A stretch of DNA of 64,000 nt from positions 62,001-126,000 of the forward strand of contig CDRNVI010000055.1 in NCBI GenBank assembly GCA_977017575.1. Direction: 5' to 3'. Each line of letters opens with the position of its first letter. Positions within the stretch are counted from its first letter, which is position 1. Origin of the DNA: Paramoeba atlantica. Lineage: Eukaryota; Protista; Discosea. Both the position numbers and the translations under genes were made by a program. The notes below the pieces were generated by a model. That model ran no database searches. It saw nothing but the letters and a program-made list of their open reading frames with translations, and was not told the DNA's origin. Shown here piece by piece: positions 5,601-56,045 of this stretch.

Positions 5601-6314
5601 TCCTGGTGCACGATACTCCACGAACAGTGTACTGGAAGCGACCCTCTCTGGAGATTGTAACCGGAAAATAAAACTAAACTCCACGGCGTGCGTGTGGAAG
5701 TCGACCGTCGAATAAGGAGCTGCCGTAAAAATCGGATTGTGCACGACCTCCGAAGAATGGATTTCGCCCTCGGTAATTACAGAAAAAGGAGGTGAAATTT
5801 CAGTGCCCACTTTGATAATATATTTTCCAGGCTGTAGGGATGGGGGAAGAGGGCAAGCCTCAGTGACCTCATCTAGTCGTCGATCGCAGGAAACACACTG
5901 AAGTTTGTGGCTTTGGAGCCATGGCATGGGAATCTTCTCGTCGAATGGACAGATCCGCTGCCTGGACTCCAGGCGGTTGTCCTCAAAAGGGAGCTCCGAC
6001 ACAGGAGGGAGGTTCCCGTAGGCCTCGACGGATCTTCCTTTCACAAGGATGCTATCCCCCACGCAGGCAAAGGGTCCTACTTTGTCATCGTAGCCCGGGG
6101 CCTCGATCGATAAGTCTGTGTACTCTGTCCAGTGCGGGATATGATATTTCGGGCGAGTAAGAATGTGACTTAAGAGCAACCCCTCATGGGTGTCGAGGAG
6201 GCGTGAGGCCTCGTGTTTCGAGAGATGATAATCCTGAAGGAGTTGCTCATGGGAATCGCGGGAGAAAACAGCATCTCCGGTGGACACTAAATGAAGGAAT
6301 ATCGGTAGAAACAT
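2682..6314 (-). CDS. Large protein with a central TBC (Rab-GAP) domain
   Basis: RRLAWPLL..IIGADVPRT (IxxDxxR) and YYQGINDV (YxQ) motifs; 1210-aa uninterrupted ORF; flanking regions not recognised. Confidence 0.7.
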   Translation of the reverse strand: MFLPIFLHLVSTGDAVFSRDSHEQLLQDYHLSKHEASRLLDTHEGLLLSHILTRPKYHIPHWTEYTDLSIEAPGYDDKVGPFACVGDSILVKGRSVEAYGNLPPVSELPFEDNRLESRQRICPFDEKIPMPWLQSHKLQCVSCDRRLDEVTEACPLPPSLQPGKYIIKVGTEISPPFSVITEGEIHSSEVVHNPIFTAAPYSTVDFHTHAVEFSFIFRLQSPERVASSTLFVEYRAPGSRNYETLRDIAIDSNFGTAQGVTAPCNEGKLQVREFLLASLREQTSAHRWRILLPDREGSPGQYRLVLRVGNLPPSTHSFDIWMPAEPQSVAAFTTPAPQLCLSGRNAGKLRMPVFDTTEQLSVQWNTVPHMRAECQLQFFAGLPDAADKDLFYAMDIRLSPEEQNNVIVDLGDLTKKVTRTSVMHLVMECSRVKPSLWGNTLRWRSSPFVVFNRDRFADHCDMLRQVEHEHFEEFAPSESVLRQQAIDKGLSEEQRRLAWPLLMRRSISYMEFSRGKPAERAIIGADVPRTNYENVNQKMLREILEQSMGVDMSWQYYQGINDVTSVAMAACGETGARQVLQGLARYWLHEYFSGRNAGDKFLTMSRLVLPLVATQSEELATHLSSSDPYVVQGAYAHAWNSFMFVGAFREDSCMPVMMRLVDFFLATDPLMMPLYVTVSMLLEDKKDMLSIEERYLLQYLPKLPKVMFREGRLEKVLRRALALHHTYPPSRLLQENTEVNDFYPLRTLPHVSLDVLPEDIEGQTFEKGYRRWFFFGPRSWIPTGRYNTLSTPYAVLEKQVNVPQGETNLEEEHVSEMHLLLDDQVERPIHTLSLPLLWEDEVSKNILSVPSYISKHIELLTEELTAQYAEILDSFLRNGQCSHLRLYPLLYSQLPGITFSSNRLIDLTAKSLTTAVNQIEQRDPHALLQKSISLCVPNLYLHSALRASLAHHRLVGATWWYYRLPRSFVRPLLHTVSPSRYHVNGEETIPRYLWFSSRSTRVVTDAYAGLAKVRLMRSHTRGSDFAVRPFVVHSDLTCTIDVVTPRHWKFRYPRSTFMLRLSHLYFRIVEQFERSPCNTLRIPQDVLAHKFVQQFLEENDVIEPESSEEERNLAIDDQLARAVTSALAVLPSETAQGLLNKHGNGGSAVQLCMGTRTRAQKMKRYLESAINQVCEFSEESEKQISASVALMEIQPQKKEGFSQKSEEEAL

Positions 6315-6747
6315 GGAGTGAGCCTCGTGTTAAATCACGCGATCAAAATGAGCTCTAATGATAATTTTTATGTAAGAAATGCAGTGGATTGATAACGTAT
6401 GAATATTTGTTGAGTGACATCTCTATTGTAAGACACACGGCGTAAATATTGCTTAAGCTGAAAGGCTTAAAAGGTTTTAATCTATTTATTTTTGTTAATT
6501 CCACAGATAAAACATACAGACGATAAAAAGGTAAAAAAAAAGTCGTAAAGAAGTCGACTCTCTTTTCCGTGTTGCAAGGGTTCCCAAAAAGTGAACGACG
6601 CGAATATGAATGTGCAAGTATAACAAACATGAATCAGAAGCATGACTATGTCTCTGAAGAAGAATAGCGAATTGTCGAGAGATCATATCCCCCATGTCAT
6701 TGTAAATCACATACCTCCGATGCGCTGAATACTGGTTTGGCTTGTTT

Positions 6748-8163
6748 CTATGATTGAGTTACGGGAGAAAATTTTGTGACCTGAGGAGCGAAAGGCGTGG
6801 GAAAAGAACTTTTCGTTTGTGGATTGCTAGGATTCGAAAACGTTGAGTACAAATTAATTCGGTTCCCATGTGTTGCGTGTCCACTATTTTTTGATTCTGA
6901 TTTAGGAGCCGTGGGATCTCCTGTCGGTTGCGCCGGGGCGCCACAAAATTTGGTTGCAAAAGTTTCACTGGAATGATTTTGAGTGCTTGGCTGCGGTACG
7001 TCCTGATCGAGTTTTACTGCTTTCTCCATTTGTGGTATTATTTTTGCTCCATTCCTACCGAGGTCCATGTATCCCAGACCGTTAATCTGAGCCTGGTGTA
7101 GCGCCAGGCGAAGCATTCCGTATCGTAGAGGAGTAACGAATCGCCCCAGGTTAAGGCGATCCTCATACGGATCCTCAATACAGAGACGGTAAAAGAAGGC
7201 ATTACCGTCTCCTCTCATCTTCTCCTCGTCTTGAGAGGTCCACTCAAGGTCAGCTTTTTTCGTCTTGCTCGGACGACTCAGTGTCACTACGTCGTTTGAA
7301 AAGTCAAATTCATGGTTATAAAAAGTAAGAAAATCACGCATGTGAAATCCAAGTTCGTTGCGTTGCTCTTCCAAATCGAAAACGCTGTATTTCGGAAGAA
7401 CAGGCTCCTGAGTTGGTACCGTAATACTCTGTGGATCAATAAAATTCATCTTTGATCGCTGTATCATGTAGTAGCACAGTAGAATATTAAGCGCATAGGA
7501 CGTGAGGTAGGCTTGTGCTGGATCAATAAGCCCCGTTCTTTTACCCCAAACCTTTATCGCAAGTGACATGAAACGAAAAAACGAATTAGAGGACCCGGAA
7601 AGTGTAGAGTTACTCGACACGAACGGCTGTGCTAAATAATTTCGTAGCAAAAGGCTGTTTCTTACACCATTTCTGCGGTTGGCGCTGATGTCTATTTCTT
7701 GCCCATTTTTCATAACACATCTAACGTATGGAACACGTGCACGAGGCTTTTCTTGGATCGCAGAGAAAGTCTCTGTATATCGCATCAGAGTTTTCGCCAC
7801 TAAATTGAGCACAAAATTTTGTTCTGAGCGCGACTGTGAAGTACTTGGGTCTCCAACAGAGGGAGGTTGCTTCAAATCTTTCTCGGTGAGTAGTACACAA
7901 TCGACATCACTTTTGGGCTCGACTACACTATTGACTACACAGGACCCGAAGAGGTAGAGCTTCGCTTTGTGCACACGCAATATGTCGGATAATTTGGAGG
8001 TCAATACACTGTGGGTGTCTCGAATACGATCCATGCATTGCGGGTCCCTGTCAACGAGGCTGAGCAAGGCTCGATGTGTGGCCGTGCTCCAAGGCGAGAG
8101 ACACTCATCTGGAATGCAAACTCGTTGCCGAACAACTTTCTCCCAAGATCCGTCAAAATTCAT
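6748..8163 (-). CDS. TUT4: Terminal uridylyltransferase, TUT4-like (RET2/MEAT1 family)
   Basis: FGS..N...KSDVD catalytic motif, RRNGVRNSLLLR, YLTSY, LCIEDPYEDRLNLGRFVTPL, all resembling trypanosome TUT4 as recalled. Confidence 0.88.
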   Translation of the reverse strand: MNFDGSWEKVVRQRVCIPDECLSPWSTATHRALLSLVDRDPQCMDRIRDTHSVLTSKLSDILRVHKAKLYLFGSCVVNSVVEPKSDVDCVLLTEKDLKQPPSVGDPSTSQSRSEQNFVLNLVAKTLMRYTETFSAIQEKPRARVPYVRCVMKNGQEIDISANRRNGVRNSLLLRNYLAQPFVSSNSTLSGSSNSFFRFMSLAIKVWGKRTGLIDPAQAYLTSYALNILLCYYMIQRSKMNFIDPQSITVPTQEPVLPKYSVFDLEEQRNELGFHMRDFLTFYNHEFDFSNDVVTLSRPSKTKKADLEWTSQDEEKMRGDGNAFFYRLCIEDPYEDRLNLGRFVTPLRYGMLRLALHQAQINGLGYMDLGRNGAKIIPQMEKAVKLDQDVPQPSTQNHSSETFATKFCGAPAQPTGDPTAPKSESKNSGHATHGNRINLYSTFSNPSNPQTKSSFPTPFAPQVTKFSPVTQS

Positions 8164-29407: not shown

Positions 29408-29446
29408 TGCTAGCTATGACAAAGATACAGTTTCTGTACCTTGTTG
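29408..29446 (+). other. Spliced-leader (mini-exon)-like sequence not followed by the SL intron GT
   Basis: tgCTAGCTATGACAAAGATACAGTTTCTGTACCTTGTTG: 39 nt, with GATACAGTTTCTGTAC identical to the conserved kinetoplastid SL core as recalled and a TTG end; followed by TTTCC. Confidence 0.7.
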
Positions 29447-38410: not shown

Positions 38411-39336
38411 GCATAAGAGGGGGGAGAACCCGTCCCCCTCCCGATAAAAATTGCGCTTTTATTTCCTGTGCGTTTTTCGGTGGAATTAACCCAATATTGC
38501 ACAATTTTTTTTCCTTCTTTTTTTTAACACTTTTCCAATTTTTACTTCTTCGCCGCCATCCATGAAAGAATCAAAGATTCGCATGGAGGATCAATTTCCT
38601 TCGTGAAGAGGGCATTGGATTGCGACGACTACGAGCGCATCCGTAAGAGCAAAGATTTGGGAAGTTTTTCGAACTTACGTGGAGGTGAGGCGCATACTGT
38701 ACACCCCTGTATTAGGGGGGGAAGCTTGATCACGAAAGCGATATCTGGCCAAACGTTTACATCGCACAGCGTATTGGGCAAGTTCTTCGAAATATTTTTT
38801 GTTTCCATGTTAAAGGGGGTGCTACATTTAGCAGAGATGATGGCCCGGGAGGGGGGCGGGGTTGTTCGTGTGTGCCAGCATTAAAAATGTTAAGAACGTG
38901 TACATATTAAATATTAAAATATTTACTGTGCAGTAGTATTTACTGTTGCGGATTACAGGAACTCCTTAATTCACATCGTACGGTACAGGCTTCTATCATC
39001 ACGTTATCCAAGGTTCCCAACTACAAAAAGTGGTACGGTAATACATTTTGCAGCCTGTGCAAAGAAAAATGATAGAGAGGAGTCGTGTAAATAGCAAAAA
39101 TATGATGCTTAATCCCTCACTTGGAAAATACTGAAATTTTGTCTGCGCTACCACCGTGGAAAAAAATCGCGTTTTTTGTGGGCAAAGACCCAGACAATGT
39201 GGAACGATTACAGGGGGGAAATTAAGTTATGTCAGCAAAAGTCGTGCTAATTTCTGGGATTAACACGATTTATGTTGACTCTTAGGCCGGATGATGGGAC
39301 TTAGCGATCCCAGCTTCCCGATCTAACTCACCCAGC

Positions 39337-40045
39337 GTACCTTGTTGAATTCAACAATATATTTAACTTCTCAGTCCCCCATGGCCCCTTCACCCCATCC
39401 AGCAAAGGAAGAATACCGCCTGGTGTGTCCGCTGCCCTCTTCGCCCCATTCCCCCCCATCACCACCTTGTTTAGCACCCCAGCGCCCTTCATCCCACAGC
39501 GCCGCCCCCTTCGCCGTCCCCCTCACCCCCTTTCGTCACCCCTTCATCCCCCCCTCCTCGCCCCCTTCGCCGGCCCGTATCGTCCCCCCCGATTTATCCC
39601 CTCTTCGCCGCCCCCTTCATTCGCTTCCGCTACACGTTTGCCCTTCTTTGCTGCCCTCTTCGCCGCCCCTCAATGCCGCGCTTCTCCCCACGCTCCCCGC
39701 CGCTGCCTCTCCCCCCCCTCCTGCTCTGACTTCGTCGCCCCCCCTTTCGCCCCCCCTCCCCGCTCACTGATCTGCGCATCCTACGCCGCCTCGCTCACCA
39801 CCAGCGCCGCCCTCCTGGCTCCCCTCCTGCGCAATCTTCTTCACCCCTTCGCCCCCTGCCTGGCCACCCTGTCCGCGCCCCCCTGCGCCCTGCACCGCCT
39901 TTGCATCCGGCGTCCTCTTCGTCCCCCTTCGCCGCCCCTTTCGCCGTCCCCCTTCGCCGCCCCACTCGCTGTCCCCCTACACCCCCTTCGCCGAAGAATG
40001 GCGCCGCCCGGTACCGAATATAACAAGGTACAAAAAAACTAGGGT
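39337..40045 (+). repeat. C-rich low-complexity repeat family, copy A (copy B about 52670-53334 and copy C about 48324-48800, both inverted)
   Basis: Shared end CCGGTACCGAA.ATAACAAGGTACAAAAAAACTAGGG in A and B; degenerate equivalent in C. Confidence 0.7.
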
Positions 40046-40608
40046 GTGCGCCATTCATGCCAAACTTTGGAGTCGTTTTTTCTTCTTCCTTTGTGCGGCT
40101 TGCAACTAGCCCATGATAACGGGGCTACAGTGTTAATTCGGAAAGATACGAGCTCGTTGAAGCCGAGGTTTAGCCCTTTGAAGCTGAGGAGCCAGTCCGC
40201 TCAAGGGTATAACACCCTGGATGACTTGGTCCGTTGAAGCTGAGGAGTCTAAATCGTTGAAGCTGAGGAGTCTAAATCGTTGAAGCTGAGACTCGAGACT
40301 CTCGAACTATGCCAGCAAGCCGTTTTCGAGCTAATTTCTCCTTTGGGAGACGTGGGGCGTTCGGAATGAATCAGGGATAGCACCCGATTCGCCGAATAGC
40401 GAGGGCATAGCTCTCCACGTGCCCGGGGGAGGCGACACTAGGACCTGCGGAACACTCGTATGTAATCGTATGATTACAATGTGAAGTCCTAGCCCGAAAG
40501 GGTTAGGATTGTTCAGCGGCCAAGGTGGGTTAAAACCCACCTTTGAGTGGCGACCTTCCCCCAAGCTACCTCGGCTTACTCCGGGGAGGCAACACCCCTT
40601 TACGGGAT
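40046..40608 (+). ncRNA. Putative structured RNA module, copy A (unknown class)
   Basis: Many hairpins with GAAA and cUU(C/U)Gg loops; differences from copy B are mostly compensatory or G-U preserving on this strand. Confidence 0.55.
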
Positions 40609-41790
40609 AAAAAGCCTTATAAACCATCTATCATCTTGATTTACCATCTACCATGTTCACTTTTTTCCCAAGCTTTGCCAATTCTTACTGTTCCTTAAAA
40701 AACACGCCCATTGAAGAAAAGTTTCATTTAGTCACTCATTTCACAAAGAAAATTGTAAACTTCAAATGCAGTAAAATATTTATTAGAGCACGGACCCATT
40801 TACAAAAGATTCCGAAAAATATATTATAATTTACAAAAGACAATTACCAATCAATCGAGTGACATTTTGTAGCGGAACTCGCGCTCTTTAGCCGCTCGGA
40901 CTATCAAAGGTGACCGTTTTAAGAGTGTTGCATTTCTAGAAATTTTCTTCAGGTTTTCAATTTCTGGGTGAGATATTTTCTTACTTTTTTTCGTCGCTTT
41001 CTTTATGTTCTGACGTGGGACTTCAATCGGAAGCATCACCAAACCATTGCTATCTAGTGAGATAAGTATTTTGATAAAAAGGAAACTGAGTGAAACGTAC
41101 CATGAACCCTCTCCCATTCGCGAGAAGCTTTGCTCGGACCCAAGCTTTTCGCCATTTGTGTGATCATGACCTTTTCCTCTAGGGAAGAAGGTTACTGCTT
41201 TGGGGTCTCTATGGAAATTAGGTCGCGCAAGACCTTCGCTTCAAGCGGGGTGAGCAAATATGCATCCATTTTTTAAAAAAAAGAACAAAATCTATTTTTT
41301 AACATACTTTCGTAACGCACTTTTGTTCCTCACAACCTTTTTCGCATTAACACGACTTTTGTTGACACAACTTTTGTTGCCTCGACTTTTGTTGCGATAA
41401 CGTTTTTTCCCTCCTGTATCTGGAAGAAATATTCTCCTCACACGACAGCGATAGCGCAATATTCATGGTCTTCACCAGCTCACAGAAACTTGCGAGAGAG
41501 AGAGAATACACTTTTTTAGCGAAAGCTATAGATTGCTTGGGGCAATCTGCAATTGTCTGCTTGTGGGATCAGGCGTGCGATGTGGGACTACGAACCTCGT
41601 CGAAAGCCTGTTATCGATGAATTAAAAAGAAAAGCAGGCACGGTAACTTTATCGAAACTTGAACAACAAGAAAAAGAGTTCAGCGAATTTGCTGTCGAAA
41701 GTTCTCTGGTGGAGAATACTATGCGTCCGGAGGGAGCAACTACAAATGCCTCGTGGAAATCGCTTTCTGGTGCTCCAAAATATAAAAAAT

Positions 41791-41878
41791 GGGGGGTCCA
41801 GGGGGTTCCTGGGGGGGGGTCCAGGGGGGGGGTCCAGGGGGGGTCCAGGGGGGGGGTCCAGGGGGGGTCCAGGGGGGG
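41791..41878 (+). repeat. (G5-9 TCCA)n array; second array at 48850-48899
   Basis: Direct reading; multiple runs of at least 5 G. Confidence 0.9.
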
Positions 41879-42584
41879 AACATACGCTCTTACCCCATGG
41901 ATAAGGTGGCAAAGTTTGTTGTTGTAACGGATTGCTTGCCGGCGAAAACCTCAGCAATCAACGGATACAGCGGTTCTTTGGAAGCGTGTAATATAATTAA
42001 CCGAATTTGGAATCTGAAGACGCTATATGGTTTTTCGCTCTCTCAGGTGGATACCTGGAGATCAAAATGCAGCAAATCCTCCGTCAATGCAGAAACTCTT
42101 GGAGGACATTCGAAATAGGAAAACATGTGAGATTTTTGTAAACTGTATCTCCCTTATGGCATGGGAAGATAGCCACACATAACGAGGTGAAGATGCCGTT
42201 TTTCCTGTGAAACTTCCCCACCTGTACTATTGGTATCTCCCTCGTCCGCTTTAGCCTGGATTTCGAAGATGATAATTTCATATTTTTGCATGAATATGAT
42301 GCCACAAAAAATGAATGAAAGAAAATGAAATTAAAAAAAATGCCGCTTCGAGGCAGGATGCATTCTCTTCGAAAGCAACGCTAATAGGGAGGGTACCGGG
42401 GCAACGCTAGGATAGGGGGGATACATTATACATACTGTATTGTATGTACGAAAATTCAATAAATCACTTTACAGAAATGAATTGGTCTCTTGTAAATCGC
42501 TTTTGCCCGAATCACATGACTCATAGCTGGATAAACTGAAGGGAGAAGAGCAATCCAAAAAAAATCAAACTACTTACTGTACAC

Positions 42585-45467
42585 TTATGGCACGTATTTC
42601 GGCTTCTGTTTATCTCTTAAATTCCGGTCTCTCATGGGAATAATTTTGCGTAACTTCATCTTTTTTGCCAGAGCTCTGCTTGTCCCGCGCACGACACGTG
42701 ACCATTCCTCTGTACTAACTTTTCGGCCTCTCACTTCAGGAGATTGCATCGAGTCCGGTTTTGCTTGCCCTTGTACCTGAGCACACTGATAAGTATGAGA
42801 GTTCTTATGGATGTTTGAGAGCCCACCTTTTGATTTGACAACAGAGACATCATGCCCAGCGCTGAAGCTATGCAACAATTCGTCCTTTATCTCATGCGCG
42901 CGAAATTTTGGAGATACATTCCCAGATACCTCGTCTTCAAATGAAACTCCGTCCTTTGTGGGGGTCTCAGAGGTGAAACGGTGTTCTCGTGGCGTTCCTA
43001 AAACCATAGATGTCTTTTCCAAGTGAGTATTATTCGCATCGTCGATAAATGTATTCGGTGTTTCCATTTGCTCGTACACTCTTTTAGAAAAGAGGGGAAG
43101 TTCTGGCGGAAATAACCCTCCACATACAGATGATTTCAAAAGCTTCCAACCCCCCATGATTTGCCATTTTTTTGTTGGTGGCAAGTGTGAACGTGGATAT
43201 AATTTACTATCTCGAGCGTAACAACGGCGATACACTTTTCCCCGGACGAGCTCTCCTTCTTTATTACAAAAGGTCGCCCACATATGACCACGATGAACAG
43301 GCTCTTTCACAATTCGAGAATATCCGTGAAGTTCCTTGAGAAAATGGGTAGAGTACTCATCAATCTCACTGCGTACTACGTAAAGTTCATTCTTTCCTAT
43401 TATTCTTGTTGCGTTTTGCACGTGAGAAGTATTGCTCAGCCTGTTGTACTTGTGGCAGGGAACTAGCAGTTTCGTTGGCGAGTTAGGATGTTCGTCGTCC
43501 TTGATATTATCGTCAGCACCTCCTTCGGAGGATGCGGCTTCCAAATTCTTCTCGTAATGATTTGTTTTTTCCAACTCACGAGCCAGCTCCACTTGACGTG
43601 ATCTTTGCGCTGCATCGTCCTCTTGTTTAGTGCGCGCATTCTTTTTTTCGGCTCTTTCTTTACGTGTGGGGGCAACTTCATTCCGAGCAACAACTAAGTA
43701 GCAAAATTTTTCCTTTGCCCGAGAGCAGCGCGTACGTCGGACCCATTTTTCCACAAATGTCAAATCAAATCCCACCGTCGCATGGCATACTCGCATTGTC
43801 TTGTCCTTCGTGCCAACGCAACAATGTTGCATTGGGCAACGTCTTTCGTGTGGGCATGGCGCTATAATGGTTGGCTGCTCGTTCCATACACCAATTCCTG
43901 CCATATCACGAAGCGCTTCTCGAAGCTCCATCATTATTGCGAAACACGCTATGCTTGCATGGTCAATGATCACAAGAACTTTACCTGTTCGCTTCCACAA
44001 TTTTTCCAGTGCAGACTTGCGTGCTGATGACGTTGGGATTTCGCTGAACGTGTACGCTGCTACTACTAGGTCTTCACGCCCATCTGCATCGTCGGCTGCA
44101 AGGTATCTCCTCCAATGCACAAGTGGTAATTCTTCCGCTAAGTTTACCATCGCTGTTTCCATCATTCCTTGGCTAGGTTCAATTGCAATGATGTGCTGCA
44201 TGGGGCGAAGTTTGGAATCACGCTGATTCATTTTATGCTGGACTTCCACAAGCTTTTCCCACCAAGTCTTTGACTCTTCATCAATCTCATCGGACGTTTT
44301 AGAGGTTTTGTTCTTCGCATCATCCTCTGCGATAACGTCCGCTTTTGCAGAATCTTCATGCAACGTGGAGACAAAATATTGAAGTTGATCTACCTTCTCA
44401 TCCGATTCTTGTGTCCAAATTCCCTTTATGTTGTATTGCTTTTCCCCTCTTTCTAAAGAGCGAGTCAAACCTAATCTGTTTTTTACTCTCTCTATTGCAT
44501 TGGCCCCAACCCGGATTAGTTCGCGCTGCAAGTCTAATGGAATGAATTTCATATCTATCTCACCTCGGCGCAGCATTCCCAAAACAGTCATGAAGCGCGA
44601 TCGTCTGCGTCGAGTATTCGTATTGGCTACTTCGCTGGTTTCATCATTGAGAAGTCCAAAGGTATATTTGCGATGAGAGACATTGTGAAAGAACGTTCTC
44701 TTTAAGTGACGCATGGTGGGGCTCGTGCGAACCATGGATTCCGGATCATACACTTCCTTGATAGCGAGCAATGTTGTTCCTGTACCAGCACCAAAGTCAA
44801 GGACGGATTTCGGAACGAACAGAGGCATAAGTTTTGAAAGTTCATGGAATACGCGATATGTTGCGGCGTACATAGCTGGCGCTCTGTATAGAAAAAAAGC
44901 AACACTGTCCATGCTATCGTACAATGCCGTTCTATTTTCTATTGCATTAAAAAGTGCAATTTTTTTGTGAAATTTCTTGAGCTTCATCTTAATCTCGCGT
45001 CTTAGCTGGGCCTGTGCTTTTTCATCAACGATTAGCATGTTCTTGTTGAGATCATCCAAGGATTCTCGTCGCGTCCACATTTTTCGCTTTATCTCGTTTA
45101 AAGTTCCGGGTTGATTCGACGGCAGCATTTCCTCTGCGTTCAGGTCGTTGAAAAGATGCCGTCGGTCATCCTCAGCTCTATATATGAGAATGGGAACCAA
45201 ATCCACCAGTGCCCTTCGTATATCGCTTTTGTCGTGAGTGCGGTATACTCTCATATAAGCAACCTGCATCGCAGTTGACATTCCTATAACCCCTGGATTC
45301 ATATTTGCAAGATCATCGCGTACTCGATACTGCCGCAGTTTTGGGTTCATTCTGCAATACCGAACCAGGCGCCGAAATTCATAGCTCTCTCGTGGTCGAG
45401 AAACTTGAGTACGCAAAAGTCTATAATGATGTCTCGCAAGTCGGTCCAGAAACGCGCGACATGGCAT
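42585..45467 (-). CDS. RSM22: Mitoribosome small-subunit assembly factor, Rsm22/METTL17-like methyltransferase
   Basis: YRAPAMYAA..RVF.E, SVLDFGAGTGT, DLVVAAYTFSE, IIAPCPHERRCP, EKFCYLVVAR. Confidence 0.88.
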   Translation of the reverse strand: MPCRAFLDRLARHHYRLLRTQVSRPRESYEFRRLVRYCRMNPKLRQYRVRDDLANMNPGVIGMSTAMQVAYMRVYRTHDKSDIRRALVDLVPILIYRAEDDRRHLFNDLNAEEMLPSNQPGTLNEIKRKMWTRRESLDDLNKNMLIVDEKAQAQLRREIKMKLKKFHKKIALFNAIENRTALYDSMDSVAFFLYRAPAMYAATYRVFHELSKLMPLFVPKSVLDFGAGTGTTLLAIKEVYDPESMVRTSPTMRHLKRTFFHNVSHRKYTFGLLNDETSEVANTNTRRRRSRFMTVLGMLRRGEIDMKFIPLDLQRELIRVGANAIERVKNRLGLTRSLERGEKQYNIKGIWTQESDEKVDQLQYFVSTLHEDSAKADVIAEDDAKNKTSKTSDEIDEESKTWWEKLVEVQHKMNQRDSKLRPMQHIIAIEPSQGMMETAMVNLAEELPLVHWRRYLAADDADGREDLVVAAYTFSEIPTSSARKSALEKLWKRTGKVLVIIDHASIACFAIMMELREALRDMAGIGVWNEQPTIIAPCPHERRCPMQHCCVGTKDKTMRVCHATVGFDLTFVEKWVRRTRCSRAKEKFCYLVVARNEVAPTRKERAEKKNARTKQEDDAAQRSRQVELARELEKTNHYEKNLEAASSEGGADDNIKDDEHPNSPTKLLVPCHKYNRLSNTSHVQNATRIIGKNELYVVRSEIDEYSTHFLKELHGYSRIVKEPVHRGHMWATFCNKEGELVRGKVYRRCYARDSKLYPRSHLPPTKKWQIMGGWKLLKSSVCGGLFPPELPLFSKRVYEQMETPNTFIDDANNTHLEKTSMVLGTPREHRFTSETPTKDGVSFEDEVSGNVSPKFRAHEIKDELLHSFSAGHDVSVVKSKGGLSNIHKNSHTYQCAQVQGQAKPDSMQSPEVRGRKVSTEEWSRVVRGTSRALAKKMKLRKIIPMRDRNLRDKQKPKYVP

Positions 45468-45866
45468 TTTTTGCGTAAAAGCACTAATTATTTTAATTAA
45501 GATATTCGGACAAAAACTACCTAAATTACTAAAAAATTAGAATATTGTTTTTAGCGCAAAAAAGCATTTTATGCTTAATTTTTACACTTTTTCTTTATTT
45601 TTAGACTGTTAGCTCATCACAGATTCGTAGAACTTTTTATTCAAAAGCAAGGGGAGGAACAGAGAGTTACCATTTACTTTAACTTTCCATTTATGTACTC
45701 CGTCATAAACTCTTATCCTCCCGATATTCTCTTGGGATTTATCTTTTACTCCTAACCGGTTCCAACTTTAAATGAAGCTTTAACTGATTATTTATGCTTT
45801 CAGCATACCGTGTTTGTTGGTATGCTTTTGGAGGTTGCCCGTTCGATTCTGTCATTCACTAGTTTA

Positions 45867-47200
45867 CTGTGACCTCCCCTTTAATACGGACAGATTTTTG
45901 GACTGTTCGTATTAAAGGGGGCGGTGCCCATGGCACAGAAAATGACGCTATTTCTTACCCGGAAGACCTACTTCTCTTATACCAGAGCTCGATCCTGCGC
46001 CTTGTCGTGGCGCTCTGGATTAACACCCGCAAGGGTTAACCAAGACAGGATCATATGTAGCTACAGAACACGACCGGCACTTAGACGGAGTGCATCAATG
46101 GTCGTGGGAGCACCCTCACCGGATCCTGTCCATCACCCTGCGTTGCGCGGCCAGCATTGAGCCTGGTTGGGACACGTTGGCTGATGTTGGCCAACATGTT
46201 GGCACATGTATGTATGATGCCATGTACAGGGATGCCAACTCCGATCTGGGGGGGTCTAAAATTTGTAAAAATTGTCCAATTTTGAAAAATAATAGCGCAT
46301 TGGAGACCTCTCGCAAAGTTGTATGTCTTTGCCATACTCGGACCGCTCAACTATAGATATTCGATCCGACGAAAAAAAACATGTTTTTTTTGTTCAAAAA
46401 TACGGCAATTTTTAATGTTTTTTTCCTTTTTTTGGCCCAGAAGCGTGTTCGCCCAAGGACTTCCCGTGGCGTTTTGAGCGCCCGGTCCTACTCTTCACCA
46501 GGGAAGACGAAGGAAACCCACAGGATGCTTTTTGTGGCGGACTATGAGAAAACTAACTCATATTCCCGCATAGGCCAAAATTTTGGGGTCCACGAGGGGA
46601 CCCCAAAATTAAGCTCTGGGTTAAGCTCTGGGTCGAGCGTTACAACGCCACTGGGGACGTGACCAGTCGGTCTCCTAAACGTTTGCCTAGGGTCAGTATA
46701 CCAGATCTCAAGGAAGTGGTCTTAAAGATTATTGACGCGGCTTATCGCGACCTTCCTTATGGCATCGCTAATTGGAGCGAGCTTTGGAGAGAGGTTAAGC
46801 GCCATGGTTCCACGTGTTCATTAAATTCCCTAAAGAACATGTTGAAAAAATCAAAAGAAAAAATTATTCTTAGAACGGTAAAGGTTCCTCTTAACTACGA
46901 ACCACAAGGAACGAAGAGTACAATTTGCCACTGAAATGCTACAGTGGAGTGACTCTGCGTTGGAAAATAATATCTTCTGTGATGAAAAAAGGTTTACATG
47001 CAAAACGTCTTCCCGACCCACCTACCTTTGTCAAAAATCTGACCCTCCCAAAGAACAGACAGGTGAATTAGAGCCTTATCATGGTGGAGAAGGGATTATG
47101 GTATGGATGGGGGTGAGTTTAAAGCAACCAGACAGAGTCCGACCAAAGAAGCTTGGAATGCAAGCATCGCTGCGAAGATAAAAAGAAGTCTGGTCATGAG
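45867..47200 (+). pseudogene. Degenerate Tc1/IS630-like transposase region
   Basis: IFCDEKRF and GGEGIMVWMGVS motifs in broken frames at 46659-47181; left terminus TA|CTGTGACC. Right end not found. Confidence 0.55.
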
Positions 47201-50200
47201 TGGTGTAAGCGACATCTTGCAAGTGTGAAACCCTAAAGCCTCAATGTTAACATTCATTGGATCTTTTTAGAAAAACTCTTAACCACGAAAGTGGTACTAT
47301 TATTATTAATATTATTCATGTTCACAGGCGCGCTAGCGCCACGGAGAAAGCGAGCGGATGGGCGTGGTTGCGTCACCTCTAAACTATATTCCCGAAAATT
47401 CACACTCACTGCGTCCGGCCTTCGTTGTTGGAGACATGTCGTGCCAGAGCGTTCTCGAAAGCTTTCCTATCTTGAGCATATAAAACTCTTTTCAGCTCGA
47501 TTGGAAACCTTTTTGTGCGTTTTTGTGCACATGGCGCGTCGACGGTGAACAAAAGGTCCGAATGCACGGGGACGGTAGGTCAAATGAAGCGTGTTAATGT
47601 CATGTATGCTCTTCAGCGGAATTGTAGAAATGATAAGTCTAGAGACAAACGACGTATGGTGGTTCTCTTGAGCGCCGAAAATCCTATTCAGCTCGGTTAC
47701 TACCCATCGAACTTTGTTTCTGTGCGCCCAAATTTCTCGCAGTGGCACACAGCACGTTCGTTTTACCGTCGTCCGAAACGTGCCCTACCAGAGATTGTCC
47801 GACAGGATTTCACATAAAACCCCGGTCAAAGTGAAGCCCCGGTCAAAGTTTGTAATTTTAATAATCTGACACTCTAAAAGAAAACGTATTTATTTTAGAC
47901 CAATATTTGAAAAATATAAAAAAATATCTTTTTGGCGCAATAATGCTTCACTTTCACCAAAACCCCTTTCAGCCCGATTGGAAAACCTTGGTGGATGTTT
48001 TTGGGATGGTGAACATGGCGAGTGGATAGTGAACAGAAGCGTTGGACGCACAAGGGCAGCAGGTTGCGTAAACCTCGTTGATTTCACGGACAGTTTTCAA
48101 CGGAATGGTAGAAATAACAAGCCTAGAGACAAGCGACGTATGGTTATTGTGTTGTTGTTGGGTCCGGGCCGTTTGTCTCCGAGGAGATATGGTCTCCTCA
48201 CTTTCCGCGTAGGTAGCGGTGCGGGTGCTCCACGCGGGGAGTAAATATACAGCGCGAGAGCCTAGGCTCAGCCGCAGCGTGTAGACACCCGACTTGCTTC
48301 CTCCGGGAGAATGAGGTGTCATGCCCTAGTTGTTTAGTGTCTTGTTATCTTGACACCGGGCGACCCATGCAAAGCGCGTGGCGATGGGGTGTTGGCGAGG
48401 GCGGCGCACCGGGGCGAAAAGGGAGACCAAGAGGGGGGGCAAACCGGCGGTGCGGAGGTGGCGAGAAGGGCGGCGCAGGGGGGGAGGCGAGGGTGGTCAA
48501 GAGGGGGGTGAGGCGGCGGTGAGGAGTGGCGCAGGAGGGTCAAAGGGGGGCGAAGGCGGTGCTGGGAGTGGAGGGGACGGCAAAGGGTGTATCGATGAGG
48601 TGGGAGTGAAAAAGGGGGTGACGGGGAGCTGAAGGGGGCGGCGAGGAGGGCGGTGAGGAGGGTGGCGAGGAGGGCGGTGCGGAGGCCAGCGTGGAGGGCT
48701 GGCACTGGAGGCGGCGAGGTGGATGAAGCGAGGAGGGAGGGCGAAGAAGTCGACCAAGGAGGGCGGCAAAGAGGACAGTAACGTTGGAGGCGCAGGGTGG
48801 TGGAGGGGGGTCGCGACTACAGGAAATCGGGCGGCGAAATCGGACCCTTGGGGGGTCCAGGGGGGTCCAGGGGGGGTCCAGGGGGGGGGGTCCAGGGGGC
48901 ATACCGCACGAAATTTTTTTGAAAAAAATATTTTTCGAAATAAAAGCGCAGAAGGGGTAGACAGGGTCTTGGCGCGCATTTTCCACCCCCCTACCCGGGG
49001 GTGATCCCCCCTCGTATGCGCAGGACGGGTCCGTCAAATTCGGATTTTTTCGGATCTTTTTTTGAAAAAAATTTCCACTTGACGAAAAAAATGGTAAAAA
49101 AAAGTATTTTTACAAAATTGTTTCCCCTATTGTAATTTGATAGTTTGGGACCTATTCTAGCTTTCCACGCCATTGTTTTCGCGAGGTGTCGCTTCTTGAA
49201 GCCGTGGTACGCCTCCCAAAATCACCGATTTTTGACCAAAAAGTGCGAAAAAGTAATTTTCGGACCCAAAGGTGTCTTTTTGGGTCGGAAGAATGGTGTA
49301 GTTGGAGTCGCATTCTATACCCAATACCTTCTGCAGCCTCGAATGCATGTCTATGAGTGATTTCCCGCGCGTAAAAGTCGAATTTAGTGCTCTGAGAGCA
49401 AAAATACCCAAAAATCACCCTATTTTTACCTGAAAATCGGCTATTGGCTCAAATCCCTCCGTTTGCTTCAGCGTCCCTGGCCAATTTTCTTTTTTAGGCT
49501 CTTCGTTAAACGCGGTGGTAGTTTTCAACGCGAAGCGCGCAGCATGAGTGACTTCTAAGTTAAAGGAAATTAACACCCCGAAAGGGTTAATTAAACTCTA
49601 ACATACCGAAAGGGTTAATTCTTCGCCCGGACACGTAAAAGCATGCTGGTGCGTGCTCTTTGTTGTCGACGACGAAGCAACACAATCTTTCCCCTCACTG
49701 CGCGTAAATTTCAATGTTGCGTTTGATGAGGAAAACTTACCAAGAAATCAGATTGACATTGTCAAGAGTTTTGACCAGTTGGGGTATAGTAACCACGAAA
49801 ATAGTTAATATGTATTTATACATATAAATATATTTGTATGTATTCAAATAAATATTTATATGTATTCATGGCATTTCATGTTCTTTTACCCCTGAAAGCC
49901 CCGGAAAATAAACTCCCCCCACACTCGCTCACGTTTCCCCAGGCGCAATAGGGAAACTTGCCAATTGATCATAACATGTTGTGGGCAATACAAAAAGGAA
50001 TGCGGTGCGAAGCGGCGCGAATTTTTTTTACCCCTTAAGCAAAGTTATTATATCTAGGGACACTTATTATACCTAGGGACACTTATTATACCTCCTAGGT
50101 ATAATAACCAGGACGGTGGTTTATATATTTTATTATCTAGGACGTTAATCCACTATTTCCATAGTAAAAAGTTTTTCCCACCTGCCCACCTGGGGAGGCT

Positions 50201-50693
50201 GTAAAAGGTTTTCCCGTTCGTTAGTATGGTGGCAATAATAAAAATATTATTAGCATATGTTATAGTAATAAATTCAATGGTTGTTTCTCTGGGTACGTAC
50301 AGAAAAATATACATGACATGATTTATGATACTACCGTTCAAAATTACATATAGTTTGATTTAGTTTAACCTAGCGCGAAAGTTGTGATTCTACAGATTAA
50401 AACTCTAGGAATTGTAATTATCCCCTTTTTATCTACAATGAAAGTTATTCACGAACATTGTATTATTGAACGCAAACTTTATCTCGGGTATCGAAAGCTT
50501 ATTCTTCCTACGATATTTTATAATTCTCTTAAAAAATGTACCTTGTTGAATTATAAATTAATTCAATTTTATAATAAGAAATGGTGAAATCAAGAGCTCA
50601 AATCTCCGAGTTAAATCAAGAATCAAGCCTCGAACAAGATGAGGTCCTCGATGTTCCGATATATGATAGTTGTTGATAGTTGTAGGCCTTTTT

Positions 50694-52669
50694 ATCCCGT
50701 AAAGGGGTGTTGCCTCCCCGGAGTAAGCCGAGGTAGCTTGGGGGGAGGTCGCCACTCAAAGGTGGGTTTTCGCCCACCTCGGCCGCTGAACAATCCTAAC
50801 CCTTTCGGGCAAGGACTTCGCATTGTAATCATACGATTACGTACGAGTGTTCCGCAGGTCCTAGTGTCGCCTCCCCCGGACACGTGGAGAGTTGTATGCC
50901 CTCGCTATTCGGCGAACTGGGTGCTATCCTTGGTTCATTCCGAACGCTCCACGTTCCCGAAGGAGAAATCGAACGGCTTGCTGGCATAGTTCGGGAGTCT
51001 CGAGTCTCAACTTCAATGGTTTAGAGGGCTGAAACCACCTGGGTTTGCCTGGGTTTGCTAATTTTCTATATTGTATTAGGCAACTCAGTTTCTTCCTTGA
51101 CGAAAAGCACAGTGTATTCTTTAATGCTTTTTTCGCACAATAAGTAACTTATTTTTCTTAGATTTTGTATTTATCCTGAACATACCACAATAGAATGCTA
51201 CACTATGATCTTCCGCCTGACGACGATGAGTTTGTCGTACATGAGTTTTCCTCTCCGGATTCCGAGAAATATGTCTCCCTCAGAAAATGGGTTTCGTTGC
51301 GAGAAACGTTTCGCATCCCTCTTGTCCGGACGGAAAGCACGATGCAATGGCTCCGCATGAGCAAGGCGGAAAGAGACGCCATGAAGTACGCTCCAGAGCG
51401 CTTGCCACCCCCAGAACTCATGTATCGCATGGAAGACAACATTGTCTCTCTATGCGTCAAGTGGGTGACAGACAGGCTTCGCCTGATTTGACGAAGAGCG
51501 AGATAAAGGACAGAGATTCTGAAATAAGAAATCAGAAAAGAATTGATCAGCAGGAACGAAGGAAACAAAGCAAACGACTTAATCGTCAAGCTCTTTCGGA
51601 ATTTAAGCTAGGTGAATGAAGCAGTCACATGTAGTAGTCATGTATGACTATGACATCTATACCTATGACATCTATATCTATTTCTGTACCTTGTTGTACT
51701 TTTTCCTTAGTTCATCCTTTCTTTCCCCGGCAACGGGCATACTCTTACTGTATTTTCATGCCCGTTGCCGGTCGGTACTAAGGCCGAAACTGTCCCTCTC
51801 TATTGTTGAAGCAGGGGACGCGCTTCCACCCCTTCATCCCTTCCCGACTCACTCCCCTGGAGTGAGTGTGCTTCCCTCTCTCGGCTTCCCCTTCTCTCGC
51901 AGTTACCTTTCCGAAGAGGCCATGCGTCACGGTGACCTCCCTTGAGGACCACTAGGCGTGTCCTCCGCCGACGAGACTCCCGGCTCTCCGCACCTGGAGG
52001 TCGCCCAGCTCTCTGCACCTCGGCTCTGTCGCAGCTCTCTGCACCCGGATTGCCCCCGAAACTGTGATATGGGGATTACGCATCCGGCTCCTGCACCTGC
52101 ACATGACAACCGAGCTCTCTGCACCTGGGACTCCAGCTCTCTGTACCCGCACACCTCCGGCGAGGGCGAACCCTCACTTGATCCACCCGTCGTATGCGGG
52201 CACGGACTTTGTGAGCATAATCTCTGCACTATAAGTGCATGAACGAACACTGAAAGTAATGATAATTTCGTACGATTTACATGGACCTCGAACTAGTCTC
52301 CCTGCACCCCCCACCTGGACCCGCCTTCCACCCCCGGGAACCCCCACCCGGATCCTCCAGCGAACTCCATAGCCGAAAAAACGCCAAGTACCTTTGCCAT
52401 TGGTTTCTCTTGGGACCTGACTGGGTTTGCCTGGGTTTGCATTTTACTGGTTTCAGCCCTCTTAGACTCCTCAGCTTCAACGGACCAAGTCTTCTAGGGT
52501 GCTGTACCCGCGAGCGGACTTGGTTCTTCAGCTTCAAAGGGCTAACCCTCAGCTTCAACGAGCTCGTATCTCTCCGAATTCTGACCCTACTCCCGTTATC
52601 ATGGGCTAGTTGCAAGCCGCACCAAAGTAAAAAGAGAGATCGCTCCAAAGTTTAGCGTAAAAGACGCAC
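50694..52669 (-). ncRNA. Putative structured RNA module, copy B, interrupted by a transposon at 51024-52461
   Basis: Reverse complement of 50694-51020 and 52465-52669 aligns closely with 40046-40608. Confidence 0.55.
51024..52461. mobile_element. Non-autonomous PIF/Harbinger-like element (1438 bp)
   Basis: Perfect 14-bp TIR GAGGGCTGAAACCA, 3-bp TSD TTA (51021-51023, 52462-52464); copy A of the host module shows the empty site. Confidence 0.88.
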
Positions 52670-52957
52670 ACCCTAGTTTTTTTGTACCTTGTTATGTTCG
52701 GTACCGGGCGACGCCATTCTTCGAGATGCAGCGTGAGGGGGTGGGCGGCGTGTGGGTGAGGGCGGCGCTGGGAGGCAATGGGGGTGAAGGCGGCGAGGAG
52801 GGCGCTGAATAGGGTGGTAAAGAGGGCGGCGAGAATAGTAACGGTAGGGGCGGAGCGAGGAAGCGGGGAGCGGAGAGGAGAGCGGACAGGATCGCGGCGG
52901 GGAGTGTGGCAGGGAGCGCGGCGGGGAGCAGGGCGGGGGGAGCGGCGGGGGGAGCGG

Positions 52958-53150
52958 CGGGGAGTAGGGCGGGGAGTAGGGCGGGGAGTAGGGCGGGGAG
53001 CAGGGCGGGGAGCAGGGCGGGGAGCAGGGCGGGGAGCAGGGCGGGGAGCAGGGCGGGGAGCAGGGCGGGGAGCAGGGCGGGGAGCAGGGCGGGGAGCAGG
53101 GCGGGGAGCAGGGCGGGGAGCAGGGCGGGGAGCAGGGCGGGGAGCAGGGC
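52958..53150 (+). repeat. 12-bp minisatellite (GCGGGGAG[C/T]AGG), about 16 units
   Basis: Direct reading; the source of the CSPP/ALLP/GAGR repeat ORFs. Confidence 0.95.
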
Positions 53151-53334
53151 GCGAGGGAGCAGGGTAGGAAGCACGGCGGCGCAGGAGGGGTGGAAGAGGG
53201 GAGGCAATTGGCGAGCAAGGGCGAGCATGGCGGCGCAGGAGGGGGGGTGCGAGGGGGCGGCGGTGGAACGAAATCCACGCTGAGGGGCATCATCGAAATA
53301 AAATAACATCGAAATAAATAAAAGACAAGGTACA

Positions 53335-53560
53335 CAGGCGGTGTAGCAGGCGTGGCGTGAGCGGCTCCATTTGCCGAACCGGTTCGCCCGCTCCTTGACC
53401 CTTCAGGGCTTTCGCGCAGAGCTTCAGAGGAGTCACGTTCATGTCCTGCATGGCTAGGAGGGCCTGAAGGCTTCGGCCGTATCCTAGCTTCGTCGATATA
53501 TAGCACGCCTTACGCAGCGAATACCTATCTTTTAAGAACGGACAGTGGGTGTGTCCTAAA
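53335..53560 (-). pseudogene. Fragment of a second, diverged tyrosine-recombinase gene
   Basis: ISTKLGYGRSLQALL....VTPLKLCAKALKGQGAGEPVRQMEPLTP aligns with TSTRMGYAGALRTLF....GTPLSLYVKALQAQGGLEPTRQMLPITP of the 60845 ORF. Confidence 0.8.
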
Positions 53561-54803
53561 GGAAACTGTCGTGCCCGGTTTGCTCTGGAAGAGACCTTGC
53601 TATCCAACAGGAGCAAGCTGACACCCCGAAACGATACTTCCCCTTTCATAATTCTTTATAAATAAACCCCCGCTCACGAATAAGTGACCCCCCCTTATTT
53701 TTAGCATAGGGGGGCGTAGGTGGGTTGTCATACCACTTTTTCGTTCAAAATTTCGAGATCTGTACGTTCCCGCTGTTTTTAGCTCATTTTAAAATTTTAA
53801 AATTTAGTCAAAAAAAATAATTGGTTTTTCAGCTTTTTTTTTCAAAAATGACAAAATCACGATATCGGCTCCTAAAAGGGGGGTTTACGGATAGTGGTAA
53901 GGTTCTTTTGAACATGAGACAGGGAGAAGGTGTTCCGATAAAACAATTATCCCGTGATTTTAACGTCTCTAGAAGGATAGTCAAAAAATTTCTGAACGAA
54001 AAAAAATGTAGCGGGGAATACACTTTGAGTCCTGTGACCATTAAAAAAATCGAATCTCGCAAAAAGAAAATTGAAAAGATATTGACTCCTTTCGACCCCG
54101 CTGGGGTACCAAAATTCAATTCTTCAAGGCGTATAAAAGGCCAACTGTGTAAAAAAGGTATACAAGTTTCGCAAAGCACTGTAAAGCGAGATCTAGCATC
54201 GCTGGATTACAATTATGCCGCTCGGCCAGTATGCCAAGGGCTTACCGAACGACAAAAGCAAAAAAGAGTTCAATTTGCTTTGAATTACAAATTGGATACT
54301 GCCCGTGTTATTTTTACGGACGAAAAGATATTTGATACCAACGATAGCAGAAGACACATGTGCGTAAAGCGCGGTCAAAAAGCGGCCCCGCGTCAAAAAG
54401 TACGTTGGGCACCAAGATGCCAAGTTTTGGGTGCTGTAGGAGTGGGGTGGAGGTATTTGGTTACTCTACGAAATGACACATCTATTACAAGTGAGACGTA
54501 CATAGAAACATTAAAACAGGTAGATTTCCCCCCTAATAGTGTATTTCAACAGGATGGGGCAACGGCACACACTGCCCGTGCCTCCAAAGAGTATATTGAG
54601 AATCGAATGAGTGATGTTCTAAGAAACTGGCCTCCCAACTCGCCCGACCTTTCCCCCATAGAAAACGTCTGGTCTATGGTCCAAGAGGCGGTAGACGAAC
54701 AAACGCCACCGGACAAACCTTCACTTATCCGATGTGTACGTAAAGCATGGTCTTCTTTAACTCAAAAAGTGATCGACAAAACAGTATTAAGTTTTGATTT
54801 TCG

Positions 54804-56045
54804 GGTGAAATTAAAGCAAAATTCGCCTTTTTTGAAAAAAAGGAAAGTCGTCCCCACTAAAAATAATTGTATCTTTTTTTGTATCGTATCACGTATTTCC
54901 ACTTTTTCCATTATTTTTCAGATTCATTTTTTAGATTCAGACTCCTCAACTCCAACACATGCCCTGTAAAGGATGCAACGGTTTCGCTTGCCGAGGAAAT
55001 CTCACTTTGAGCAAAGTTTCTGTGTGGAGCGAATCGAAATGCAGGGAGTGGTTAAGAACCCATAAGTTGGTGGCTCAGAAGGTTGTATGTTATAAAAGAC
55101 TACACAAGGCGCCCTATACTATGCACGTCACTGACGGGAAATGGAGGTGTACTAAAAAATGCAAAGGAATGTACGCCACCTTAGGACCTCTCGTACCTGG
55201 AAGGGCACAAAGAAGTGCAAAGCAAACATTAAAGTACATAATTTTGTACGCTCGTGGTGGACGACATGCGGATTCGGCAGCGGAGACAGAACTTAGCCAG
55301 CAGACCATTGTGTCTCTAAGGCAATGGATGGATGGCATGATGGCCACAGCTCATGTTCGCCGACGTATCAGGAATCGCGGCAGCGTTGGTTCAATGCAAT
55401 GCGATGAGACATATTTTTCTGTACGGAAACGTCACCGAGGTTCTCATGGTGCAAGACGGGTGCGAGATGATGGTACAGAAGTTGCACAGACAATTGCTGT
55501 GACTACTCGAGCGAACAAATTATCTGAAATGTTCATGGAAGTTGTACCTGATCGTAAGGCGAGCACGTTACTTCCTCGAATTGAAGATCTGGCGAGCGGG
55601 GGGAGGACACGAATTTGGACCGACGGGGCGCGTCACAATATCTGCCTTGGTGGATGCTATAAGTGGAATAGCGTGAACCACCGCCGAGAATGGATAACAG
55701 AAGAGGGTGTCCACAAGAACACTGTGGAGTGCGCGAATTCGGTGGCGAAGAAGAGACTTAATCGAGAAGGAAACGTATTAGGAAGGAAAAAGGATAAACG
55801 GGCAGATCGTGTGCAAGCCAATGCTGAAAAATGCAACGGCAGCTTACGGTACAATGGCGGCGATGTAATGCTGCGCATCCTACAGAATCTACAAGATCAT
55901 TGTCATTGTATTCATTTATAAGTCTTGTCCAAGTATTTAAGTAGAAAACTAGAAGCGGAAAGTGTTGATTTCATTGCACAAAATTTTTGAAAACCGCAAA
56001 AAAAAACTTTTTTTAAAAAAAGGCGAATTTTGCCTTAATTTAACC
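54804..56045 (+). mobile_element. Merlin (IS1595-like) DNA transposon, apparently intact (1242 bp)
   Basis: GG-starting TIRs of about 37 bp, 8-bp TSD GATTTTCG (54796-54803, 56046-56053). Confidence 0.93.
54959..55921 (+). CDS. Merlin/IS1595 DDE transposase (320 aa)
   Basis: QCDETYF..RKRHRG, TLLPRI, IWTDG, VNH, GVHKNTVE; Cys/His-rich N-terminus. Confidence 0.92.
   Translation: MPCKGCNGFACRGNLTLSKVSVWSESKCREWLRTHKLVAQKVVCYKRLHKAPYTMHVTDGKWRCTKKCKGMYATLGPLVPGRAQRSAKQTLKYIILYARGGRHADSAAETELSQQTIVSLRQWMDGMMATAHVRRRIRNRGSVGSMQCDETYFSVRKRHRGSHGARRVRDDGTEVAQTIAVTTRANKLSEMFMEVVPDRKASTLLPRIEDLASGGRTRIWTDGARHNICLGGCYKWNSVNHRREWITEEGVHKNTVECANSVAKKRLNREGNVLGRKKDKRADRVQANAEKCNGSLRYNGGDVMLRILQNLQDHCHCIHL

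Follow-up and report, generated by a model that had tools for sequence, protein, structure and literature searches.

A structured RNA-like module recurs in a 64,000-nt stretch of Paramoeba atlantica DNA (hereafter the window) and very probably represents the ~520-nt 3' untranslated region (3' UTR) of an RTE-like LINE family, carried in the window by two passenger copies, A and B, and mobilized by a mechanism in which it would serve as a handle for the LINE reverse transcriptase (RT). Both window copies are old, non-coding passengers that depend on the LINE. The module of copy A occupies 39992-40622, as homology to copy B and to other genomic copies starts at 39992 and not at 40046, where the original prediction had begun it. 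Comparison of the arms 39992-40252 and 40271-40622 with the inverted arms 52462-52723 and 50680-51025 (85-95% identity) confirmed the second, inverted copy, which spans 50680-52723 and is split by a 1438-bp (1.44-kb) insertion at about 51021-52461. The earlier view that the module has no coding explanation also held, with 5-13 stops in each of the six frames across 40046-40608, and no ORF with a Pfam match lies upstream of the module in either copy. The features of the two copies are as follows.

39337 to 39347, + strand: head of copy A, consisting of the final 11 nt of the spliced leader (SL), GTACCTTGTTG.
39348 to 39995, + strand: leader and C-rich minisatellite of copy A, made of CCCCTTCGCCGCC-like units; its length differs among copies and its ORFs have no Pfam match.
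39996 to 40056, + strand: head stem-loop of copy A, with outer stem GAAUGGCGC/GCGCCAUUC and loop AACAAGGUAC; common to all passenger families.
40095 to 40322, + strand: 5' half of the LINE-derived 3' UTR, with five UUGAAGCYGAGG motifs at 40157, 40178, 40234, 40257 and 40280 and short hairpins between them.
40232 to 40290, + strand: 23-nt tandem duplication of 2.6 units (TRF, 100% matches), private to copy A, which adds one motif.
40330 to 40608, + strand: 3' half, a multi-helix domain of 70 pairs, marked by covariation and folding z.
40609 to 40652, + strand: 3' tail of copy A, AAAAGCCTTATA and then a short degenerate repeat resembling CCATCTA.
50680 to 51020, - strand: 3' part of copy B, with the final motif, then the structured 3' domain and a tail resembling (CAACTAT)n; 91-95% identical to A.
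51021 to 52461, no strand given: nested non-autonomous DNA transposon in copy B, bounded by terminal inverted repeats of 13 bp (GAGGGCTGAAACC) and a duplicated TAA target; outside the RNA module.
52462 to 53333, - strand: 5' part of copy B, comprising the SL fragment, leader, C-rich minisatellite, head stem-loop and first three motifs.

Contigs from two DNA runs join position 39279 to 40653 with 22 other letters between, resembling an empty site for copy A. The 22-mer of this joint recurs at six other genomic places, where the host repeat is uninterrupted (C20:575949 and C109:12383 are examples), indicating that copy A sits inside another repeat family; its insertion was perhaps accompanied by a small target deletion. 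The 5' limit of copy A is ambiguous between 39280, given by the empty-site joint, and 39337, given by the SL fragment 57 nt away. No target-site duplication (TSD) is recognisable for either copy, and our search of the genome for an intact LINE with the 3' UTR of their subfamily (fam1) returned only a remnant, L005. Given these two observations and the disruption of copy B, both copies are probably dead. The 1438-bp nested element carries a 3-bp TAA target duplication of the kind seen in PIF/Harbinger-type (PHIS) elements and holds an SL-like stretch at 51678-51696.

Between A and B lies an intron-less 960-aa ORF (42585-45467, - strand) in which Pfam recognises a mitochondrial ribosomal methyltransferase domain of Rsm22 type (E = 1e-25), flanked on both sides by (GGGGGGTCCAG)n tandem repeats (41791-41878 and 48850-48899). 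Farther along, 53821-55921 holds a Tc1/mariner-type DDE_3 transposase ORF followed directly by an IS1595/Merlin-type DDE ORF. The region with A, the Rsm22-like gene and B, nested MITE included, recurs at ~96% identity on contig C6 (149542-163600; L002, L003 and L027), matching 38547-42144 and 50680-52723 on the window side; the counterpart may be a haplotype left uncollapsed or a recently duplicated segment.

This arrangement bears on the idea that the module is the terminal repeat (an LTR, or a repeat of inverted or split type) of some larger element. Tyrosine-recombinase retrotransposons, which are common in this genome, would be one candidate, and A and B would form the ends of a 13-kb unit. 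The inverted orientation of A and B 10 kb apart, its recurrence on C6 and further convergent pairs on contigs C1, C3 and C27 are what such a unit would look like. The interval between A and B, however, contains an ordinary gene for an Rsm22-like methyltransferase and encodes neither a recombinase nor an RT or transposase; the outer flanks of A and B are unrelated to each other, and single copies elsewhere have their own TSDs. The C6 match, moreover, extends far past the repeat at 96%, as a haplotig or segmental duplication would, and we regard the terminal-repeat reading as highly improbable.

The module is far more abundant than the two copies originally counted. A BLAST search of the 45.7-Mb genome from which the window comes returned 76 matches to it. 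The 13-nt core motif, GTTGAAGCTGAGG, was counted 132 times (reversed control, 0), which at about two to three motifs per copy corresponds to ~55-65 repeat copies. We distinguished five subfamilies among the copies examined; others lie on contigs C63 and C20.

fam1: A, B, their C6 duplicates and L005; the window's own subfamily.
fam2: L006-L010 and the outlier L011; identity with A over the 3' half, ~74%.
fam3: over 30 copies, which match one another at 97-99%; has the 5' half and the last ~45 nt in common with A.
fam4: L047-L052; the autonomous LINE.
fam5: L043-L045; the same 5' half on an unrelated 3' end.

In the fam5 copies (contigs C66, C43 and C19), the head stem-loop and motif array are joined to another 3' end, with the hairpin GCCCTGTAATAGGGC and a (TTAACA)n-like tail, which suggests that tails are swapped modularly between LINE partners. 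Young copies are 98-100% identical. Read depth in the DNA runs placed the fam1-specific middle near the single- to two-copy level and the shared parts 20- to 100-fold higher. Among the sequencing runs, the stretch was present in three DNA assemblies, and one possible RNA run contained none of it.

An intact autonomous LINE links the module to retrotransposition. In L052 (contig C40), a 1180-aa ORF (3321-6863) with an RT domain (RVT_1, E = 5.8e-32) and a weak Exo_endo_phos match ends 3 nt ahead of the module (6866-7395), which runs into an (ACATTCA)n-like tail; the ORF begins 24 nt past an SL head, and the 14-bp TSD AACAAGGCTTTCAG brackets the complete unit of 4.1 kb. A second autonomous copy on contig C74 (L051/L047) is flanked by the 12-bp TSD ATATGCATGAA(C). 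The module also follows the stop codon in L051 and L053 and adjoins ORF C-termini in L007, L008 and L047, with 13-14-bp TSDs in L007 and L008. Truncated or internally deleted LINEs, L007 and L008 among them, have the module at their end too: L009/L010 retain an RT motif with YADD upstream of it, and in L005 an RT remnant is joined to a fam1-type 3' UTR 91% identical to A. At least nine copies of the fam4-LINE 3' UTR are 100% identical, indicating that the family was active recently. A second LINE lineage, represented by the ORF P0001 on L053, shares 50% amino-acid identity; its 3' UTR is nonetheless the same and runs into an (ATCACT)n tail.

The marks that target-primed reverse transcription leaves are spread across the copies, namely variable 5' ends, TSDs of 12-15 bp (L052, L051/L047, L021, L007 and L008) and variable simple-repeat tails, with (ACATAA)n, (AAAC)n, (ATTC)n, (TATC)n, (ATCACT)n and (ACATTCA)n occupying the corresponding position in different copies. 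That the module is a LINE 3' UTR follows from its position next to the stop codon of an endonuclease and RT ORF, its hairpin and microsatellite end and its inclusion in an element with TSDs. The nearest database relatives of the ORF are AP-endonuclease and RT proteins of 950-1100 aa (PF03372/PF14529 with PF00078) on 3-4-kb contigs. The RTE-like label is an architectural one, given for a single ORF with an N-terminal AP-endonuclease and RT and without ORF1 or RNase H.

The 3' half of the module (40330-40608) adopts a covarying fold that includes a UUYG hairpin, a three-way junction, a long-range helix (40425-40432 with 40554-40561), a GNRA-capped hairpin (40485-40510), a penultimate hairpin (40565-40590) and a terminal hairpin (40594-40608). 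All the individual pairings first proposed from copies A and B reappeared in the consensus fold. These include the change of GAAU/AUUC (40368-40371 with 40387-40390) to GAAC/GUUC in B, the A-U to G-U change in AAGGUGGG/CCCACCUU, and the pairing of GGGGGAGG (40425-40432), whose partner is 40554-40561 and which contains a G-U in A and a G-C in B. The GAAA, UUUG/UUCG and GUAU loops are likewise present in both the sequence and the consensus fold, and the mismatch noted for CCUAGCCC in copy B is a U-U. As to the claim that the differences between A and B preserve structure, in the 3' half three differing pairs stay paired, two of them by compensatory change, and five are broken; on its own, the comparison of A with B is not convincing.

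The statistical case for the fold is drawn from a comparison of subfamilies. An alignment of 11 sequences over the full module was used with the RNAalifold structure, to which the terminal hairpin was added. Across its 120 pairs, 96.5% of cells were paired, compared with 34-52% in slid controls, and 14 pairs had changed on both sides compared with 1-3 in the controls, a result that none of 500 shuffles reached. With L053 added, the 3' half alone gave 95.4% of cells paired over 70 pairs (35-56% when slid) and 13 of the 70 pairs compensated (0-3 in controls), and again none of 500 shuffles reached either value. The hairpin at 40485-40510 by itself contains five compensated pairs in five sequence versions. 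The shuffle control is generous, since the structure was predicted from these same alignments, and the slid controls together with multiple independent pair types are the stronger argument. The expectation that covariation would hold with more copies was thus realised for the 3' half, over five diverged subfamilies, but not for the 5' half, where it did not rise above shuffles.

Folding z-scores were -3.55 (+ strand) and -2.88 (- strand) for the whole module and -5.87 and -5.22, respectively, for the 3' half. We tried folding energy as a strand test and discarded it as uninformative, given how close -5.87 and -5.22 lie. The + strand is instead fixed as the RNA strand, as had been proposed, by the excess of G-U over A-C cells (121 versus 25) together with the orientation of the upstream same-strand ORF, the tails at the 3' end and the target duplications. 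The 3' half is a real, selected RNA fold.

A fold of this quality, with GNRA and UNCG-like loops and a z of -5.87, might also be expected if retroposition had amplified a self-cleaving ribozyme or a free-standing family of ncRNA genes, and the 5' half is better conserved than the LINE protein. However, in each copy that we examined the module closes the 3' side of a LINE or of a LINE-type passenger bearing a tail or TSD; in the window copies, mutations have broken pairs and a transposon has inserted. Comparison with Rfam (15) gave no matches at gathering thresholds over the whole window, and a cmscan search at E<=10 over 39500-41200 returned three chance-level matches of 13-17 bits, with nothing credible for any family, ribozymes included. 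An independent ncRNA or ribozyme is accordingly very unlikely. Of the description of the module as an unclassified, multicopy mobile or retroposed functional RNA, the TE RNA element is what survives, and the ribozyme and the free-standing ncRNA gene found no support; unclassified remains apt in that no Rfam model exists, but LINE 3' tails that non-autonomous partners also carry are a well-described kind of element.

The 5' half of the LINE 3' UTR is organised differently. It contains four nearly invariant copies of the 13-nt motif GUUGAAGCUGAGG, and five in A, where the fifth stems from the 23-nt duplication, which none of the 15 other copies in the alignment shares, not even L002, the near-identical duplicate on C6. 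Its sequence is 83-99% identical across all subfamilies (column identity 82%), its folding z is -2.05, and it yielded one compensated pair, with no covariation measure exceeding shuffles. Between the two LINE lineages the 5' halves are 89% identical and the proteins 50%, whereas the 3' halves are only 59% identical yet keep their fold. The identity of the 5' halves fits both strong primary-sequence selection on the motif array and segment exchange between lineages. Candidate helices here, namely two GGGGCUAG pairings and two closing helices involving the last motif or GCAAGCCG, are compatible with the sequence and were set aside for want of covariation support. The CUGAGGA within the motif resembles by eye the CUGANGA box of a hammerhead, a candidate that we rejected, as it has no GAAA or stem III context and no cmscan match. 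A metagenome scan with a 15-nt version of the motif returned at least 120 single chance matches and no locus with a motif array, the pattern being too short.

We infer that the invariant array is a sequence-specific docking site. A broader proposal, which we consider rather unlikely, would make the 5' half a multivalent docking platform for a host or element factor, for example a poly(A)-independent 3'-end-forming or RNP-assembly device in a host whose 3'-end formation is as a rule tied to trans-splicing downstream, with the SL-antisense loop of the head likewise pairing with the spliced leader.

Elements that end in the module and have no ORF comprise A, B, fam3 (more than 30 copies) and the L006, L011 and L043 types. 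These passengers share a layout of SL fragment, C-rich minisatellite, head stem-loop, LINE 3' UTR and microsatellite tail. A complete fam3 passenger, L021, is ~1.0 kb long and has a 15-bp TSD, a CCTTGTTG head, a C-rich body, the module, an (ACATAA)n tail and no ORF. C-rich tracts, differing in unit and length, precede every non-autonomous copy; the minisatellite of copy B has a 12-nt C-rich unit (52896-53179), and a DNA contig joint from 39338 to 39915 reveals length variation of the C-rich body in A. The head, which lies at about 52719-52657 in copy B, is a 60-nt, three-tier stem-loop whose loop AACAAGGUAC is antisense to the SL 3' end. Over 17 distinct aligned copies its outer stem covaries, with a G-C pair replaced by A-U, a G-U in fam3 and UGACACC/GGUGUCA in one copy. 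Its read depth is ~100-fold the single-copy level, and it is absent from the autonomous LINE.

A search with ARAGORN over 38500-54000 found no tRNA-like head, nor did we find a tRNA-, 7SL- or 5S-derived one with the internal pol III promoter of a classical SINE; the head has no Rfam match and consists of the SL fragment and C-rich repeat instead. Since a tRNA-like head is missing, SINE-like passenger is a safer term than SINE. At L052:2640-2690 and in the 5' flanks of L020, L024/L025 and L030, the opposite strand reads an A-run, then a full-length spliced leader, then mRNA-like sequence, and in three independent fam3 copies the junction of A-run and spliced leader falls at the T-run of the C-rich body. 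These junctions may represent another SL-headed retroposed sequence that prefers A-runs, or template-switch chimeras.

The identity of the spliced leader itself is secure. Its RNA gene lies on C74 (L051:4178-4300), ~350 nt upstream of the LINE insertion, where the exon end, written ...CAGTTTCTGTACCTTGTTG, ...GATACAGTTTCTGTACCTTGTTG or ...ACAGTTTCTGTACCTTGTTG, is followed by the intron start GTATGAGAAGC (within 4178-4226), an exon/intron junction typical of kinetoplastids. Copies A and B keep the last 10-11 nt of the leader, with the fragment GTACCTTGT of copy B at about 53333-53324 (- strand). LINE heads carry it too, as CCTTGTTG in L051 and as one 16-nt and two 10-nt SL reiterations in L052. 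By analogy with the relict leaders of dinoflagellate retrogenes (PMC6050394), these remnants may mark a trans-spliced RNA intermediate. Elsewhere in the window (29410-29446, + strand), a near full-length spliced leader, ...GACAAAGATACAGTTTCTGTACCTTGTTG, is followed in the DNA by non-intron sequence and may be another SL-headed retroposed copy.

The use of trans-splicing by this organism also invites the thought that dispersed copies serve the host, for example as 3'-UTR stability or processing elements like Leishmania SIDER, and not that selection for transposition maintains them. In trypanosomatids, 3' UTR elements dominate gene regulation, and the copies here are intergenic. However, the covarying changes set active lineages of LINE and passengers apart, not orthologous genomic copies, the young copies are nearly identical, and copy A lies on the strand opposite to its nearest gene, leaving a host function with little probability.

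The reading that we favor, a LINE 3' UTR shared with passengers, suggests the following route. Element RNA would be made on the + strand and trans-spliced like host mRNAs, which would leave the SL remnant at the 5' end of the DNA copy. The LINE protein would bind the folded 3' UTR, nick the target and reverse-transcribe from the tail by target-primed reverse transcription. Because passengers carry the same folded 3' UTR, the LINE protein could select them through this handle and copy them in trans. By analogy with characterised LINEs, a recognition handle by which the RT chooses its template is the most likely role of the fold.

This assignment removes a false lead, as the module is not a novel ribozyme or ncRNA gene. 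In its place stands a well-delimited LINE and passenger system in a little-studied spliced-leader protist, with an intact, recently active master and several passenger families. The large covarying 3' UTR is a candidate RT recognition handle open to probing, and the consensus fold and the 13-nt motif are handy markers for masking some 60 genomic copies.

Proteins of stringent-type LINEs recognise a stem-loop in the 3' tail that is common to their partner SINEs (PMC4176376, PMC1636434, PMC3747384). The module shares with the tails of eel UnaL2/UnaSINE1 and zebrafish ZfL2 its position after the ORF, the short tandem repeats that follow, its presence on passengers and a conservation of structure beyond that of sequence. 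The UnaL2 and ZfL2 tails are, however, stem-loops of a few tens of nt, whereas the module is ~520 nt with some ten helices; unlike tails of that type it also carries a repeated, invariant 13-nt motif array, and its binding by the LINE protein is proposed by analogy. RTE LINEs and their SINE partners (BovB/Bov-tA) offer a second parallel, with the same single ORF of ~1000-1200 aa encoding AP-endonuclease and RT in a compact element (4.1 kb here), the same microsatellite-like tails, many 5'-truncated copies and passengers that use the LINE 3' end as their base. Unlike BovB/Bov-tA, the elements described here have an SL remnant at the 5' end and an unusually long 3' UTR, and their clade is assigned by architecture only.

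In size and complexity the module recalls the 3' UTR of R2, which is long and multi-helical, is conserved in fold rather than in sequence and is the RT binding site. The endonuclease of R2 is restriction-like and its rDNA target is fixed, whereas the LINE here has an AP-type endonuclease and dispersed targets, and the two have no sequence or Rfam similarity. The hominid SVA is a composite non-coding passenger in which a C-rich 5' repeat and a VNTR body are joined to a 3' module taken from elsewhere, and a LINE mobilises it in trans. Our passengers resemble SVA by analogy, the sequences and hosts being unrelated; recognition of SVA is of the relaxed type and depends on its poly(A) tail, whereas the passengers here carry the LINE's own structured tail.

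In dinoflagellate retrogenes, relict spliced leaders at the 5' end mark an mRNA-like intermediate (PMC6050394, PMC5585692). Here, in contrast, the SL mark is found on a LINE and its passengers in an organism with a kinetoplastid-like spliced leader, and it comprises the last 8-16 nt, sometimes reiterated. Set beside these systems, the module defines a new family of a known kind of element, a structured LINE 3' tail shared with passengers, and is unusual in its ~520-nt size, its invariant motif array, its SL-marked 5' ends and its SVA-like composite passengers.
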